Of a stretch of 14,595 bases of DNA, positions 1-14,595 are shown in pieces. Below the pieces are notes generated by a model. The model was not told the DNA's origin, did no database searches, and was given only the letters and a program-made list of their open reading frames with translations. Position numbers and translations under genes: made by a program. How positions within the stretch are numbered: the stretch's first letter is position 1; each line of letters begins with the position of its first letter. The stretch comes from Piromyces finnis finn (Eukaryota > Fungi > Neocallimastigomycota), in the NCBI GenBank assembly GCA_002104945.1, contig MCFH01000220.1, positions 1 through 14,595 of the forward strand. Reading direction: 5' to 3'.

Positions 1-135
1 AGGTCCATAAAATAAAGTTGAATCATCTTAAGTTTGATTTCACAATCATAAGGTCTATGAGGAGGTAACACTTCACAATTTTTTTCTTAAACACTTCACT
101 AAATTCTAAATATTGGGTTGGTACGGCGACCAATT
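1..135 (-). pseudogene. pol: pol fragment immediately upstream of the reverse transcriptase domain
   Basis: Manual translation with two frameshifts gives VPTQYLEFSEVF..NCEVLPPHRPYDCEIKL.DDSTLFYGP. LPPHR..D..I.L..GP is the typical Ty3/Gypsy segment preceding RT. Confidence 0.85.
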
Positions 136-429
136 TATCTTTATTAATATCTTTTCATTATTATTATTATTACTACATGATTCATTATCATTATTACATG
201 TTTCAATAATTTTCGTTACAATACATTTAACTTTTTTATTAAAACTAATATATTCATCATCGCTTCATCTTCATCATTAATGGTTCTAACAAGGCGGCCT
301 TTAACATATTCTTTTTCTTCATGTTTGGGACGGAGGGATCTACTTTCGGTTTTTTGGTTAAGCTTCGGTCGAGAACATCATGATCTAATTGATCATTCTT
401 GACTTCTTTCTTGGTTTTCTTTTCTTTTA

Positions 430-795
430 CCTTTGTTACAGTGTCTGGCACAATAACCAGAACTAAAAGCGATTTTCTTAGAGTCCTAGAAAGCATTTGG
501 ATTATGCTTCTTTATCCACGGCAAACCAAGAATAACATCAACACCGGGGACTTGTAATCCATAAAGTTGAATTACTTCGAAGTGATTTTTGCAACGGAGC
601 ACACTTCTCAGTCCTTTCCCAAACACTAACAACTCCATCACTAACACCTGAAACACGGAATGGTTCTACTTTTTCCAAATTAATACCAAGGTCTTCAGCA
701 AGACTTGGATTAATGAAATTTAATTCAGAACCGGAATCAATTAAAACCTTAATTTTAACTTCCGAAACTTCATTGGTACTCAAGTAAAAATCCAC
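430..795 (-). pseudogene. pol: Retropepsin-like aspartic protease, frameshifted and with an in-frame stop
   Basis: The ORF track shows VLIDSGSELNFI (catalytic DSG). A shifted frame gives DVILGLPWIKKHNP (516-539 encodes DVILGLPW), followed by TAG and then SKKIAFSSGYCARHC. Confidence 0.92.
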
Positions 796-899
796 AAGTT
801 TAAATCACTTTTCACTCCCTTGACTCCAACTTTGTAAATTTTTGGATTAACAATTTTTGGAGTCCTTTCTTTAACAATTCTTAACACTTTTCTGGGCTT

Positions 900-1265
900 T
901 ACTCTATTAGGACAATTAAATTTTAAATGTCCTGGTTGTTTACAAAGAAAACATAACCCTTTTTTCTTTTCTTCTTCAAAGGTCTATGTTTTCATTGTAA
1001 TTTTTACTTGATCCTTGGATATTCACATACTTTTCGCTTTTTTCTCTACTAATTCTAAATACATCCACATCCATAGGATCATTAGCCCTTCTACATTAAA
1101 ATAAAATTCACTTAAGGAATTCCTTTTCATCATATCTTCAACTAAAATAGTTGAAGAAATCAATTGTTCAATTGAAGTTGGGTTTGATTCAATGAAAGCC
1201 AACTTCTCCCTAAGTGGTGGTAATAAACCTTTCAGAAACATGTAGATTTTTGCGCTATCATTAAA
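900..1265 (-). pseudogene. gag: gag C-terminal part with CCHC zinc knuckle
   Basis: FNDSAKIYMFLKGLLPPLREKL, then in a shifted frame DPMDVD, then GLCFLCKQPGHLKFNCPNR (CX2CX4HX4C at 953-912). Frameshifts and a TGA are present. Confidence 0.93.
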
Positions 1266-1876
1266 TGTAAAGATATCAAACGCCTCTGTTTGATATCTTT
1301 AATGTAACTTAAGCCACAAGTATTATTGTTTAAGTTACACAAATTATATTCAGAAAAAGAAAATGAGACATAATTTATTTATTAATAATTAAAGTTTAAA
1401 ACAAAATAAATTATTAGTTTTTTTTAATGTTTAACAAGTAAATTAAAATTCTCAATTTAAATCCCTAGTTTTAGTATTGTTTTTTCATAGAAATAAATAA
1501 ATAATATATAAATAATAAATGATTAATATATCAATAATACATGTGCACATATTCAAATTGAATAGTACTTAATTTGAATTGCCAATTGTATTTTACTAAA
1601 AATAGTTATAGTTTAAATATTTATTAATAATTAAGATTTTAGTGTAGATTTTAAATAATACTATATTTTAAATAAATAGTTATAATAATATAAATGTATT
1701 AGGAAAAATATAAATAAAGATATTTTTCATCATTTTATCGATGTAATTGTTATTATTAAAATTCTATTATAATAAAAGATATTTATAAAACAATTTTTTA
1801 TTTTATTTTTTCAAATTTTTGTGTTATTGTAATAGAATAGATATCCTAATCTATTCTTTCAGTGTTCAACATTACA
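1266..1876 (+). mobile_element. Solo LTR (copy A, 611 bp) inserted antisense into gag
   Basis: Termini TGTAA..TTACA; 5-bp TSD TTAAA at 1261-1265 and 1877-1881. Removing it restores the gag frame ...QNSSFN-DSAKIYMFLKG. Roughly 90% identical by eye to the reverse complement of 2709-3324. Confidence 0.95.
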
Positions 1877-2324
1877 TTAAAGCTTGAATTTTGGCTAATA
1901 CGTTGAAACTCGGTAATGTAATCTAATACCTGACCAAGTTTCCTTTGGCGAATATTATCTAATTTACCGTTAGCTACAACGGTATCGTATCTATAACTGC
2001 CAAGTTAGCCTTCAACCTATCTACAAATTCATCATAATGGTTTAAAACCTCACTATTATTCTTCATCAACACTGAAGCCCATTCCAACGGTTTACCAGAG
2101 AAGTATGATATAACAAAGTCGACCTTGACTCGATCTGTATTATACAGTGTCGGTCGAGTACGAAATACCAACTCAACTCTGGTTAAAAATCCATCCAATT
2201 CTCTTTGTTTACCAGAAAATACAGGTGGAGCATTAATAATGTTCCCCGAGTTCCCAGAAACACCTACAGTCCCATCACCCATCTCCAAATTCAAACTTTT
2301 AAACTCACTAATTAAGTCCTCCAA
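1877..2324 (-). pseudogene. gag: gag N-terminal/capsid part (retrotransposon gag, DUF4939-like pattern)
   Basis: APPVFSGKQRELDGFLTRVELVF...DRVKVDFVISYFSGKPLEWA. One frameshift near 2002 continues into YDTVVANGKLDNIRQRKLGQVLDYITEFQRISQNSSFN. The track's first codon is TTG, so the true start is uncertain. Confidence 0.9.
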
Positions 2325-2398
2325 TTCAAAATATAATATACAATATAAAATTAAAAATGGTTTCTTACTACTGTTTCAAGTAAGTAATCTTAAAAAAA

Positions 2399-2423
2399 TT
2401 TTTTTTTTTTTTTTTTTTTTTTT
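2399..2423 (+). repeat. T25 homopolymer in the element leader
   Basis: Direct count; preceded by A7. Confidence 0.9.
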
Positions 2424-2528
2424 AATTACACTAGTACAATATATTCTAATACAAAAGTTATTCAAACGCGTTCTGCAAAGCAGTGTCGAACAAGTTTTGT
2501 ATTACTAATTCCTGTAAGATTTTAATAG

Positions 2529-2668
2529 TTTTCTTTCTTCAATTTCTTGTCCTTCGGCGGTAGAATCCAACCAAGTAGCTTTTTCTTTCTTCAATATCTT
2601 GTCCTTCGGCGGTAGAATCCAACCAAGTAGCTTTTTCTTTCTTCAATTTCTTGTCCTTCGGCGGTAGA
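2529..2668. repeat. 52-bp tandem repeat, about 2.7 copies, in the retroelement 5' leader
   Basis: Unit ttttctttcttcaat(t/a)tcttgtccttcggcggtagaatccaaccaagtagct starts at 2529, 2581 and 2633. Confidence 0.97.
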
Positions 2669-2697
2669 TACCCTAACGTATTCTTGGATTTCGTTAG

Positions 2698-2708
2698 GTA
2701 ATTGTTAT
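2698..2708 (-). promoter_or_regulatory. Putative self-priming primer-binding site (ATAACAATTAC on the minus strand)
   Basis: Abuts the CA end of the 5' LTR, lacks TGG, and is the exact reverse complement of LTR positions 2833-2843. Confidence 0.75.
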
Positions 2709-3324
2709 TGTAAAGTCGACACAAAAGAATAGATTAGGATATCTATTCTATTACAATAACACTAAAATTTTAAAATAAAATAAAAAAAATTGTTTTTTAA
2801 AAATATCTTTTATTATAATAGAATTTTTAATAATAACAATTACATTGATAAAATGATGAAAAATATCTTCTATTTATATTTTTCCTAAATACATTTATAT
2901 TATTATAACTATTTATTTAAAATATAGTATTATTTAAAACCTATGCTAAAATCTTAATTATTAATAAATATTTAAACTATAACTATTTTTAGTAAAATAC
3001 AATTGGCAATTCAAATTAAGTACCATATAATTTGAATATGTGCCCATGTATTATTGATATATTAATCATTTAATAATTATATACTAGATGTCTATTTCTA
3101 TTAAAAAACAATACTAAAACTAGGGGTTTGAATTGAGAATTTTAATTTATTTGTTAAACATTAAGAATAAACTAATAATTTATTTTGTTTTAAACTTTAA
3201 TTATTAATAAATAAATTATGTCCCATTTTCTTTTTCTGTAATATAATTCGTGTAACTTAAACAATGATATTTATGGCTTAAGTTACATTAAAGATATCAA
3301 TCTGTGGCGTTTGATATCTTTACA
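2709..3324 (-). repeat. 5' LTR of the Gypsy element (copy B, 616 bp)
   Basis: TGTAA..TTACA termini, full-length homology to copy A, no flanking TSD (gttat versus cactt), and position directly upstream of leader and gag in the same sense. Confidence 0.88.
2871..2878 (-). promoter_or_regulatory. Candidate LTR TATA box (TATAAATA)
   Basis: Starts 35 nt upstream of the predicted transcript start at 2843. Present in copies A (1709-1716) and C, and at identical spacing in relic D (5323-5330). Confidence 0.6.
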
Positions 3325-3753
3325 CACTTTAATTTCTTAGTCTTAGTATTGTTTTCTGATAGAAATAGATAAATAGTATATAAATAATAAATGATTAATA
3401 TATAAATAATACATGGGCACATATTCAAATTGAATAGTACTTAATTTGAATTGCCTATTTAATTTTACTAAAATAGTAATAGTTTAAATATTTTATTAAT
3501 AGTTAAGATTTTAGCATAGGTTTTAAATAATACTATATTTTAAATAAATAGTTATAATAATATAAATGTATTTAGGAAAAATATAAATAGAAGATATTTT
3601 TCATCATTTTATCAATGTAATTGTTATTATTAAAAATTCTATTATAATAAAAGATATTTTTAAAAAACAATTTTTTTTATTTTATTTTAAAATTTTAGTG
3701 TTATTGTAATAGAATAGATATCCTAATCTATTCTTTTAGTATTCAACATTACA
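3325..3753 (+). repeat. 5'-truncated LTR (copy C) of the same family
   Basis: Aligns to copy A from about 1453 to its ..CAACATTACA end; the first ~187 nt are missing; begins exactly at the terminus of copy B. Confidence 0.92.
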
Positions 3754-5137: not shown

Positions 5138-5560
5138 TGTAAAAGTTTTATAAAATTTAAAATAGATTTAAAATTTTTACAATAAAACAATAAACCAAAA
5201 TAAATAAAAAAGAAACAAGAAAATAAATTATATTTAAAATATCTTTTTATTAATTTTATTTAGTTATTAACTAAATAATAGTCAATAACAATTACATTGT
5301 TTTAATCAAGAAATTTTACATGTATTTATATTTTTTGTAAATTATATTTTAATATACTATTCTATTTAATTATACAATATTCAATTAAATAAACATAACT
5401 AATTTAATACTATTAATTATATAATAAAATAATAAAACTAAACTAATTAAATACACTTTGATTCAATTTGAGCAAACTACAAATTAAATACAGTCCATGT
5501 ATTACCTATATTTATTATATATTTGCTATTAAAATGCTAATTTAAAACTACGCTAAGTTA
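5138..5560 (-). repeat. Old, highly diverged relic of the family-1 LTR (copy D)
   Basis: Shares aataacaattacattg (5284-5299 = 2832-2847), tatttatattttt after the same 23-nt gap, ccatgtatta at about the same offset, and ctattaaaa..aaaacta.g. Boundaries are approximate. Confidence 0.7.
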
Positions 5561-6282
5561 TTAAACTAATTTTAATTAAATAAAAACTTTTTAAGATTTA
5601 ATTTGATATTTAAAATATTAAATTTAATTATCCATTAATTTAAATATTTATCCAATTTTCATTTCTAACTTTGATATTTTAAAATTAATCTTATTTAATT
5701 ATTCCGTAAAATTATATAATAAATTTATAAATAATTTTCATTAAATATCAAAATTATATTTAATAATTATTAATTATTAAATAATTTAAAGATATATTTT
5801 ATATTTTACATTTATAACTAATGTAACTTTATTAAATAGATTAATGATTTATTAATTGATTTAAAAAATATAAAAACTCGAGAATAATTTGATAATTAAC
5901 TTTGGAGAAATCATTAAGTTTTATGACTTTACTTAATGATATAATATAATTGATTAATACATGTAGTAATAAATTTATTAATAAATAAACTTTAATAATA
6001 AATATTTTTGTATTAATTTAATAAGTAGGGTTAGGGCATTCTGACCTAACTTACTTCAATTCAACCTTAACTCCTTAACAAATAAATAATCATGAATCCA
6101 CTGATATCATGATTATTTATTAAGGGTTAAGGTCATATCTTAACCTTTCTAATTTTTTAAATACTTCTTTAATTTATAATTTATTTTGGAAATAAAATAT
6201 TGTTGATTTTAAAATTTTATAAGTGATTTCACATTTCAAGTGATCTTGAAATATAGATTTCACTTGTATTCGTGAAATAAAC

Positions 6283-6330
6283 TAGTGTGCTTACCACACT
6301 TTTCTTTAATAAAATAATCGCTTTTGACAA
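6283..6330. repeat. 48-bp dispersed repeat with small hairpin, copy 1
   Basis: tagtgtgcttaccacacttttctttaataaaa..atcgctttt.gacaa recurs at 8768-8815. Confidence 0.9.
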
Positions 6331-7738: not shown

Positions 7739-8767
7739 ATTGGTAAGGTTCTGTTAATAATAGGAATAATAAATATTTGAATTTAATACTTATTTTTATT
7801 TTTATTTTTCTGGTATATCGTTTTTATTAGAACTTCTCTTTTTATTTTATATAATTTATACATTTAAAGTTTAATATCAATTATCAATACTTTTAATTAT
7901 TAATTTCGGAAATAAACAAAAAAAATACATTAAATCTTAATAAATAAAAGATATTTTAATAACTAAACAATAAAAATAATAAGTTGTTTAATTTTATAAA
8001 TAATATAGTTTAATAATTTAAAAATAAGTTTAATTTAGAATATAATAGTAGTTCAATTTAATAAAAATAAAATTTAATTAAAATATTTACACTTAGATAA
8101 ATAATATTAATTTATTAATTAAAAATTCAGTTAACTTAATATGATAATAATGATAAATGGTTAAGCTATTTTAATATAAAAACATTATATCATTATTCCT
8201 TATCAACAAAAGTGTCACAATAACATATATAAAAATTTAAAAAATTTGGACACATGGAAAAATTAAAATTTTTTTTAAAATTTGAAAATTTGAAAAAATT
8301 TATTTTTTAAATTTTTATTAAAAATTTCAAAGTATAAAATTTCTAATATTTGAAATTATTAAATTTTTTAAAATTATTAAATTTATTATTAAAAATTTTA
8401 TTTTAAATTTATTAACTATTTACAATAATATATTAATTATTAATTTATAAAAATTAATATTTTATAATTAGATAATAATTAATTAAAATTAAAAATGTAA
8501 TAATTAAAATTGTTCATGTATAAAAAGAACAAAAATTGACAAAAATTACGAAGCTTTAGCGTTAGTAATTTTTTAACTTAAAGTTAATAAAATTTATAAA
8601 CTTCTATAAAACCAAAAACTTTAAAAATTTTAATATTTTTAATAACTTAATATATGCTGATATTAAGTTATTGCTAAAATAAAAATATTATTTAAATTTC
8701 TTTATATAAATATTATTAGCTTTACGCCTTCAATAGGAAAGCGTATTATATTTGTTAATTAATATAA

Positions 8768-8815
8768 TAGTGTGCTTACCACACTTTTCTTTAATAAAAA
8801 ATCGCTTTTTGACAA
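8768..8815. repeat. 48-bp dispersed repeat with small hairpin, copy 2
   Basis: Near-identical to 6283-6330. Confidence 0.9.
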
Positions 8816-11169: not shown

Positions 11170-12045
11170 TACCTTAATTCTAAATAAGCTTAGAAAGTGA
11201 TATATTTGTGTGTAATTGAATGATTTATTTTTACTTGCTCATTCTACAAGTTTATATAATTATTAAATATAATTTAAAGTTGTAAAAACACATCTTGTTT
11301 TATAATATTAGTTTATTTATTTAAAATAAATGTATAATACATCTCGCTATGTATTATAAAAAAAAATATATTAATTTATTATAATTTTAAAATATTCTAA
11401 TTTTCCTGGCTAATTAGTAACAATCTTTAAAAATATATTTTCTATTTCTATTTATAATAAATATTACATTTAAGTTTGTTTATAAACAAAAGTTGTTTGT
11501 ATTTTTTACATTTTTAAAATTTAATTAAACATTTATATTTTATATTATTTTGATTATTTACTATTATTAATTTATATTAAGTTTATATAATTTTAAAATC
11601 AGCTATTCTATTAATTCATTATTTATAAATTTCATTCTTTATCAAAAATGATACAAAGAGGATATTATCTTAATTCTATAAATGAATATAGAAAGTGATA
11701 ATATTTGTATCTAAAATTTAATAAATAAAAATAAATAAGAAAATAAAAATAGAATAAATGATTTTTATACTTGTTCATTTGCAAGTCTTTGTTAGTTTAA
11801 AATATAAAATTATTTTATTTAATTATAAAGTTTAATATTTAATAACTCTTGTATTATTAAATATATATATGTTATTGTTTAATACATCTTGAATGTATGT
11901 AAATATAATCACAACTATTATTTTAATAAAATTTAATATTATTATCTAATTTTTACTGGATTATTAGGAACATCTTTTAAAATAAAATAATTCTATCACT
12001 ATTTATACAAAATTATTATTTTAAAGTATAATTATAAACAAATAT
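11170..12045. repeat. Old diverged tandem duplication, period about 500-560 bp
   Basis: Ordered anchors occur twice: taattcta..tagaaagtgata, tacttg.tcatt, aatacatct.g, tctaatttt.ctgg.t.attag.aaca, ttctat..ctatttata, tataaacaaa. Confidence 0.65.
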
Positions 12046-12055
12046 AAACTATTTA

Positions 12056-12163
12056 TTTAAAAATAAATAAACAATTAAATAGACAAAAAGTTTACATTTA
12101 TAGTTTTTAATTTAATAATTTTTACATGTTAATTATTTTAATTTTCAACTATCTGTGTTTTAA

Positions 12164-12218
<55 letters not shown>

Positions 12219-12486
12219 TTATTATTATATAATTTAAAAATAAATAAACAATTAAATAGACAAAAAGTTTACATTTATAGTTTTTAATTTAATAATTTTA
12301 TACATGTTAATTATTTTTAATTTTCAACTATCTGTGTTTTTAATATTATTATTATTATTCTTATTATTATTATTATATTTAAAAATAAATAAACAATTAA
12401 AATAGACAAAAAGTTTACATTTATAGTTTTTAATTTAATAATTTATACATGTTAATTATTTTAATTTTCAACTATCTGTGTTTTAA

Positions 12487-12550
<64 letters not shown>

Positions 12551-12580
12551 TTATTATTATTATTTTATTATTATTATAAA
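12056..12580. repeat. Compound tandem repeat: three ~110-bp units, each followed by an (ATT)n tract
   Basis: agacaaaaagtttacatttatag...caactatctgtg begins at 12081, 12258 and 12404; ATT tracts differ in length. Confidence 0.97.
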
Positions 12581-13043
12581 TTCATAATTTATAAATTTAA
12601 TTATTTACCAAAATGTTACGGTTCGAGGAATTTACTTTTATTTATAAAAATATTAATAAATTTATTAATACTCAAAAATATATTAAAATGAAATAAGAAA
12701 ATTGTTTTATTAAGGTATTAATATAAAATTATAAAATAAAATAAAATAAAAATAAAATATCTGTATATTCTCTAATTCTTATAATATACACCTTTTTATA
12801 CTTTTTGTAAAAATTAAGTAGTGTTAATTAAAAGAATTAGTCTTTAATTATTTACATTAATTTTAGTATTTAAATTACTTTTAAATGAATAATAAAATTA
12901 CATTACTATTATAATAAATATTTATACATATTATTAAATTGATTAACATACATTAAAAGTTTACTTTAAATATTTAACTAAAGAATTTTACTATTTTACA
13001 GAAATATTATTCATAATTTTAATTAATAAAAATTCATTAACTT

Positions 13044-13289
13044 GATAAATTAAACTAAAAGTTCAATAAACTATAATTTTCAATATATTATTATTACTAA
13101 ATTAATTTTTAAGTTTAATAAAATAAAATTTAAGTTCAATAAAAAATAATTATTAATAATTTTAAAGATAAATTAAACTAAAAGTTCAATAAACTATAAT
13201 TTTCAATATATTATTATTACTAAATTAATTTTTAAGTTTAATAAAATAAAATTTAAGTTCAATAAAAAATAATTATTAATAATTTTAAA
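13044..13289. repeat. Perfect 123-bp tandem duplication
   Basis: 13044-13166 and 13167-13289 read identical base by base. Confidence 0.95.
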
Positions 13290-13435
13290 TATAATTTAAG
13301 TGTATACATTAATTTACAAATAAGAATATTGTAAAGTTTTCATACATTTAGGAACAATAATGGATTAGGTCATAATCATTAATTATGACAAGAATAACAT
13401 TATTTGTTGGTTCCTTAACAAAAAAATTAAAAGTG

Positions 13436-13509
13436 GCTCGCGTAGCCTAATTGGATAGGGCGTCAGACTTCTAATCTGAAGATTGCGGGTTCGAGTCCCG
13501 CCGTGAGTG
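13436..13509 (+). tRNA. tRNA-Arg, anticodon TCT, intronless, no encoded CCA
   Basis: Acceptor GCTCGCG/CGTGAGT, D-arm GCCT..GGGC, anticodon arm TCAGA-CTTCTAA-TCTGA (TCT at 13470-13472), T-arm GCGGG-TTCGAGT-CCCGC, discriminator G. Closely resembles fungal tRNA-Arg(UCU). Confidence 0.98.
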
Positions 13510-13724: not shown

Positions 13725-13770
13725 TAGAAACAGGTAGTAGAAATAAATTGAAATGCTATTTTTAAATAAT

Positions 13771-14365
13771 AATAATATTTTTATGAATAATATTTATATG
13801 ATATATTTTTATGAATAATATTTATTAATTTTATATGAATAAATTTTGAATTTATATATGAATAATATTTATATGAATAATATTTTTATGAATAATATTT
13901 TATGAATAATATTTTTATGAATAGTTTTACTATGAATAATATTTTTATGAATAATATTTATATGAATAATATTTTTATGAATAGTTTTACTATGAATACT
14001 ATTTTTATGAATAATATTTTTATGAATAATATTTATATGAATAATATTTATATGAATAATATTTATAGAATAATATTTTTATGAATAATATTTATATGAA
14101 TAATATTTATATGAATAATATTTTTATGAATAATATTTTTATGAATAATATTTATATGAATAATATTTTTATGAATAATATTTATATGAATAGTTTTACT
14201 ATGAATAATATTTTTATGAATAATATTTTTATGAATAGTTTTACTATGAATACTATTTTTATGAATAATATTTTTATGAATAGTTTTACTATGAATAATA
14301 TTTATATGAATAATATATTTTATGAATAGTTTTACTATGAATACTATTTATATGAATAATTTTTC
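13771..14365. repeat. 15-bp minisatellite, about 40 units, four main variants
   Basis: Units atgaataatattttt, atgaataatatttat, atgaatagttttact, atgaatactattttt; degenerate at both edges. Confidence 0.98.
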
Positions 14366-14595
14366 TATGGATATTTTATAATTGATAGGAACAAAATAAA
14401 TTTATTATAAACATAAACTATAATATGAATAATACACTAAATAATACTATGAATAACTTAAATAGTAAATAAAGTATACTCTTATACTTTGTATATTTAT
14501 GTATTTTACTATTACCAATATTTATTTTTATGTTTTAAATTTATTAAATTCATACTATTTTTATTATATTATTATCAATAATATTATTAATTTAA

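Follow-up and report, generated by a model that had tools for sequence, protein, structure and literature searches.

The window (the whole stretch of 14,595 nt analysed here) comprises the first 14.6 kb of contig C136 in the extremely AT-rich genome (56.5 Mb, 232 contigs) of Piromyces finnis, an anaerobic gut fungus (Neocallimastigomycota). It is best explained as holding the 5′ end of one dead element from a Ty3/Gypsy chromovirus family, here termed F1, that is abundant and was recently active, accompanied by other LTRs of the same family:

1–2697, minus strand: leader, gag and protease of the F1 copy, running off the contig start and containing a solo LTR
1266–1876, plus strand: solo LTR of the F1 family, inside gag and in opposite orientation (TSD TTAAA at 1261–1265 and 1877–1881)
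2529–2668, minus strand: part of the leader, in which a 52-nt unit is tandemly repeated 2.7 times
2709–3324, minus strand: 5′ LTR of the F1 copy (TGTAAAG...CTTTACA, 616 nt)
3325–3753, plus strand: 5′-truncated F1-family LTR, head to head with the 5′ LTR and 100% identical to it over 246 nt

The limits of the 5′ LTR (3324–2709) were set from about 30 genomic copies together with the 5-bp TSDs and polypurine tract of intact copies, and within these limits it shares 92% identity with the LTR of an intact young copy. The copy in the window is dead because its gag-PR frame carries frameshifts and more than 15 stops, the frame-breaking small indels among them possibly being long-read homopolymer errors. 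Its similarity to young copies is that of a mosaic, with 97% identity and many small indels in the gag-PR DNA (1–1265) and, over 1882–3324, 84% in the leader and 5′ part of gag next to the 92% of the LTR, a distribution that suggests recombination between subfamilies. The element sits in an older LTR of the same family, and the perfectly matching stretch of the two LTRs (2723–2968 and 3492–3737), set against 86–95% in the remainder of both, suggests gene conversion or an assembly effect. A second copy of the window region, at 100% identity, is found around positions 304274–308184 and beyond on contig C188, and reflects redundancy between contigs or else a very recent duplication.

Intact members of the family have LTRs of 603–608 nt that are 100% identical within a copy (603–616 nt when the window copy is included), 5-bp TSDs, a polypurine tract preceding the 3′ LTR, and a single ORF of 1530 aa that encodes gag, PR, RT, RNaseH, IN and a chromodomain. 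More than 60 copies are 97–100% identical in the RT-IN region and mostly open. Four small sequencing runs also contain the element. The domain order PR-RT-RNaseH-IN with a C-terminal chromodomain is that of Ty3/Gypsy elements, the best solved match is Ty3, and the chromodomain scores 25.5 bits as PF00385 (cut-off 25.1), a domain that the relatives carry too. The closest proteins (77–89% identity) come from metagenomes and one 55% relative from Orpinomyces, while the best named matches outside the gut-fungus group are chromoviruses of ascomycetes, basidiomycetes, fish and axolotl (43–48%), followed by plant elements (38–42%). A dictyostelid host, which the base composition had suggested at first, is rejected in view of the relatives from Orpinomyces and gut metagenomes. 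A quick maximum-likelihood tree, built without Tf1 or sushi references, gathered all gut-fungus families into one clade (support 99) that is nested, together with Dikarya and vertebrate chromoviruses, in a larger clade with 100% support, and left plant and algal chromoviruses outside; membership of F1 in the named Tf1/sushi clade, to which this tree speaks from its neighbours, is likely.

The junction between the 5′ LTR and the leader contains the elements of a predicted primer system, all of them on the minus strand:

2871–2878, minus strand: TATAAATA box, its first T lying 35 nt before the G at 2843, where the RNA is predicted to start
2833–2843, minus strand: predicted self-primer GTAATTGTTAT, the 11 nt with which the element RNA would begin; exact complement of 2708–2698
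2709–2843, minus strand: predicted R-U5, 135 nt from the putative RNA start
2698–2708, minus strand: predicted primer-binding site (PBS) ATAACAATTAC, at +1 after the CA of the LTR and without TGG

The first-pass annotation had proposed that the 11 nt past the LTR are complementary to a site within it, and the segments at 2708–2698 and 2843–2833 are indeed exact reverse complements, with pairing that reaches 12 nt when T at 2832 is matched with the LTR-terminal A at 2709. Its remark that no TGG occurs at the site holds for the first 20 nt past the 5′ LTR of the window copy, and the TATA box it placed 35 nt upstream of the G at 2843 is found at 2878–2871. From 2843 to the LTR end the distance is 135 nt, and the predicted R-U5 spans 132–135 nt in F1 as a whole; the transcript start at 2843 itself is a prediction drawn purely from the TATA spacing. 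How readily such a match could arise was gauged with 20,000 dinucleotide-preserving shuffles of the family LTR, among which 69 (0.35%) contained an exact 11-mer complement and 28 (0.14%) a 12-mer. Because the LTR is 83% A+T, the F1 match taken alone is suggestive rather than conclusive.

Within the family both partners are strictly kept. F1 copies with intact ORFs and 100% identical LTRs carry the site, the same 11-mer follows the LTR in all 23 LTR copies with adjoining internal sequence, and three leader subtypes diverge only a few bases beyond it, while the primer is invariant in about 30 LTR copies. A genome-wide pattern search returned the identical site in 50 of 51 F1 junctions, the lone variant having an A-to-G change in the site and an unchanged primer, so that a G.U pair is kept; a further hit on contig C135 did not belong to an element and was due to chance. 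Neither of two outcomes that would have overturned the proposal was seen: no copy carries a TGG primer-binding site, and the site is invariant in the young intact copies. The expectation that site and 5′ end would covary fared unevenly: no covariation was seen inside F1, where both 11-mers are invariant and the single variant is a wobble rather than a compensated change, so that conservation is all the family offers, and it was borne out across families, where seven distinct pairs were found.

These pairs come from F1, from F2 and F3, two other Ty3/Gypsy families of this genome whose RT-IN shares about 48% identity with that of F1 and which are 59% identical to one another, and from F1 relatives in gut metagenomes and public assemblies (80, 64, 57, 55 and 54% identical to F1), with LTR ends fixed from TSDs or polypurine tracts where possible:

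F1 and its 80% relative (L040): site ATAACAATTAC, LTR complement GTAATTGTTAT
64% relative (L042): site ATTTTCCAACTAT, LTR complement ATAGTTGGAAAAT
57% relative (L045): site ATAAAAACTC, LTR complement GAGTTTTTAT
55% relative (L082): site ATAATCTTACTA, LTR complement TAGTAAGATTAT
54% relative (L047/L048): site ATAACCTTAC, LTR complement GTAAGGTTAT
F2: site TTACTAACGCT, LTR complement AGCGTTAGTAA
F3: site ATACTAACGCT, LTR complement AGCGTTAGTAT

In all seven, the 10–13 nt starting at +1 past the CA of the LTR (offset 0) are the exact complement of one site in that LTR, and the first 18 nt past the LTR are free of TGG in each. In its length and offset each of the seven complements lies within the bounds by which self-priming has been called elsewhere, at least 10 nt of complementarity beginning 0–5 nt past the LTR (PMC6317226). 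Between F2 and F3 one base has changed in the site and one in its complement with the pair preserved, a clean compensatory double change, and the complements of these two families recur at shuffle frequencies of 5e-5 and 2e-4, respectively. The 80% relative keeps both F1 12-mers while the remainder of its LTR and leader has diverged. The base following the primer is T in most families, which allows pairing to continue onto the LTR-terminal A, and in the 54% relative the duplex reaches the ACA of the LTR end. A TATAWAW box has its first T 34–41 nt upstream of the first paired base in six of the seven families, F3 having only a TATA at –41, whereas a box at such a distance from a random LTR position is expected in 3–10% of cases per family. 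The complementary LTR site would therefore coincide with the point at which a TATA-driven transcript begins, as it does in Tf1. Complementarity, position, conservation, covariation between families and TATA spacing are all direct observations, and it is the recurrence across families that we regard as the decisive evidence for reading the site as self-primed. The earlier suggestion that the family self-primes thereby gains strong support, from seven primer/PBS pairs of equal geometry in one clade.

Most likely, then, F1 starts reverse transcription as Tf1 of Schizosaccharomyces pombe does. According to this scheme RNA polymerase II would start about 35 nt past the TATA box of the LTR, at GTAATTGTTAT, and the first 11 nt of the RNA would fold back over the R-U5 of 132–135 nt onto the complementary site adjoining the LTR. 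The RNase H of the element would then cut the RNA where the duplex ends, and the 11-nt RNA remaining on the site would prime minus-strand DNA, the first base copied being the last base of U5. For F1 the start of the RNA, its cleavage and its use as a primer are steps that we infer from the sequences and their comparison. Such a mechanism is of a known kind. It has been demonstrated for Tf1, in which the first 11 nt of the RNA complement a site next to the 5′ LTR that lacks a tRNA site (PMC7175516), and predicted for Tf2, Tj1, Tcn1, vertebrate sushi-type elements, the plant Tcn1 clade and TAR copia elements (PMC4600332, PMC7175516, PMC6317226), so that for the group to which F1 belongs self-priming had already been predicted, from fungi to vertebrates (PMC4600332, PMC6317226).

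The likeness to these systems varies in degree. Tf1 and Tf2 share with F1 an 11-nt complement to the 5′ end, a single gag-pol ORF and an integrase chromodomain, although they are unrelated to the gut-fungus families at the DNA level and reside in a different fungal phylum. Priming and RNase H cleavage, demonstrated in Tf1, are predicted in F1, and in the gut-fungus families the geometry differs from that of Tf1 in being variable, with an R-U5 of 132–283 nt and a duplex of 10–13 nt. For Tj1 of Schizosaccharomyces japonicus self-priming was predicted, as here, from complementarity between 5′ LTR and PBS (PMC4600332). Tcn1 of Cryptococcus, the plant Tcn1 clade and the sushi-type elements are likewise chromoviruses for which the same rule led to the same prediction (PMC6317226, PMC7175516), but their hosts and lineages are different, the gut-fungus families forming a clade of their own in the quick tree. 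Skipper of dictyostelids resembles F1 as a chromovirus of an AT-rich host without a TGG site; unlike F1, in which the complement is exact and covaries, it has a polypyrimidine stretch with no complementary site in the LTR (PMC5006619).

Predicted RNA folds bear on how the primer might reach its site. In the predicted R-U5-PBS folds of F2 and F3 the 5′ 12 nt lie on the site with a pair probability of about 1, and the fold z-scores are –5.7 and –2.9, respectively. When the F1 RNA is folded only as far as the site, the predicted primer-site duplex has a probability of 0.9, which falls to 0 once 45 nt of leader are added, a loss that speaks against the scheme and arises because U5 and leader pair together and these pairings are preferred. 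One additional feature of the window copy is relevant in this context:

2751–2760, minus strand: U5 segment GTTATTGTAA, an 11–12-nt complement that can pair with the LTR end and the first half of the PBS (2704–2713)

The stem formed by this segment is kept in the 80% relative despite a different loop between its arms, whereas complement searches and predicted folds showed no common U5 stem in F2 or F3. The segment may assist priming as a U5-IR-like stem, or it may compete with the primer for the site. A bolder reading would make self-priming ancestral and universal in the gut-fungus chromovirus radiation (at least seven lineages, 10–13-nt primers), with F1 in addition gated by a U5 RNA switch; this combination we consider possible but doubtful. 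In its gating part, offered as tentatively as the whole, the conserved U5 segment, which repeats the 3′ half of the primer, could sequester the LTR end together with half of the site, and the leader would alternate between a closed and a priming-competent form.

Several other explanations of the F1 match deserve consideration alongside self-priming. Pairing between the 5′ end and the PBS could have been selected for another purpose, such as a packaging panhandle, dimerisation or translation control, with a different RNA as the true primer. Covariation establishes that the pairing matters and is silent on what it is for, and further conserved pairings surround the F1 site, both of which leave room for such a role. 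Against it, the paired site always lies exactly at +1 past the CA of the LTR, where a minus-strand primer must end for the LTR end to be correct, the duplex of 10–13 nt fits the 11 nt of Tf1 (PMC7175516), and the first 18 nt of the site contain no alternative TGG in any family, so that we judge this explanation unlikely. Less probable again, and indeed improbable, is priming by a host tRNA, tRNA half or other small host RNA, to which the LTR match would be incidental. Half-tRNA priming does exist in other LTR elements (PMC6317226), and the tRNA comparison covered 12 distinct host tRNAs, an Rfam search with 2914 first-look candidates having returned mostly identical copies of two tRNAs. Among these 12 distinct tRNAs from the fetched loci, a small part of the host set, the best match was 8 of 11, and the site has no TGG; moreover, a host primer would not predict that the site differs in all seven families and always finds its match in the family's own LTR.

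The remaining explanation, chance complementarity in an LTR of such composition, could appeal to the shuffles, in which a single 11-mer match arises in 0.35% of trials, and to the presence in the same LTR of a second complement of 11–12 nt to the same region. It is refuted by the recurrence of the layout across families, since the same arrangement at equal offset appears in six further sequence-distinct families, and the compensatory change between F2 and F3 and the conserved TATA spacing stand against it as well; its likelihood is accordingly close to nil. Self-priming thus remains the favoured account of the F1 junction.

Apart from priming, the ends of F2 and F3 elements showed a relation to tRNA genes. 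In either orientation, the ends of F3 elements lie 10–11 nt upstream of where the mature tRNA begins in tRNA-Ser and tRNA-Arg genes, and one F2 copy ends 14 nt upstream of a tRNA gene, at the following places:

L036, 8372–8384: F3/F2 end near a tRNA gene
L037, 8564–8576: F3/F2 end near a tRNA gene
L039, 8277–8292: F3/F2 end near a tRNA gene
L054, L073 and L077: F3/F2 ends near tRNA genes (upstream of the tRNA at about 1501)

Such positions suggest that these presumably self-primed chromoviruses target Pol III start sites in the manner of Ty3 and Tj1. Tj1 inserts immediately upstream of Pol III genes (PMC4600332), and F2 and F3 likewise lie 10–14 nt upstream of tRNA genes; the activity of Tj1 has been shown experimentally, and the F1 copies examined differ from it in being nested in other elements and not associated with tRNA genes. 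The window contains a tRNA-Arg(TCT) gene (13436–13509), identical copies of which number at least 34 genome-wide. The sequence that ends 14 nt upstream of it (...CCTTAACA, 13414–13421) may be the end of another LTR.

Further repeats are scattered over the window. At 5284–5355 (minus strand) lies a diverged LTR-like stretch in which TATAAATA is followed after 27 nt by GTAATTGTTATT (74% identity to the region of the F1 site), and it is probably an old solo LTR, because what follows its putative end (...CTTTTACA) shows no match to the primer. Fragments matching the 3′ end of an F2-type LTR (...CGCTTTT(T)GACA) occur at 6276–6330 and 8761–8815, so that several families are nested in this region. 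Long AT-rich tandem arrays with a 15-nt period occupy 12041–12556 and 13734–14381, and 13021–13266 is a 123-nt tandem duplication.

A search of a limited literature collection did not turn up any work on gut-fungal LTR retrotransposons; Tf1-type self-priming is apparently unreported for anaerobic gut fungi, and what is new here is the host phylum. Self-priming as predicted for F1 and its relatives extends the Tf1 type to an early-diverging fungal phylum, and the seven covarying primer/site pairs constitute a natural compensatory-mutation series for a mechanism that has been studied experimentally almost only in fission yeast. Annotation tools that seek only tRNA sites will mislabel such elements as devoid of a primer site. 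F1, F2 and F3 are probably active, given their many copies with identical LTRs and intact ORFs, and for gut fungi, which are without genetic tools, well-defined active retrotransposons, some of them apparently aimed at tRNA genes, could serve for insertional tagging.
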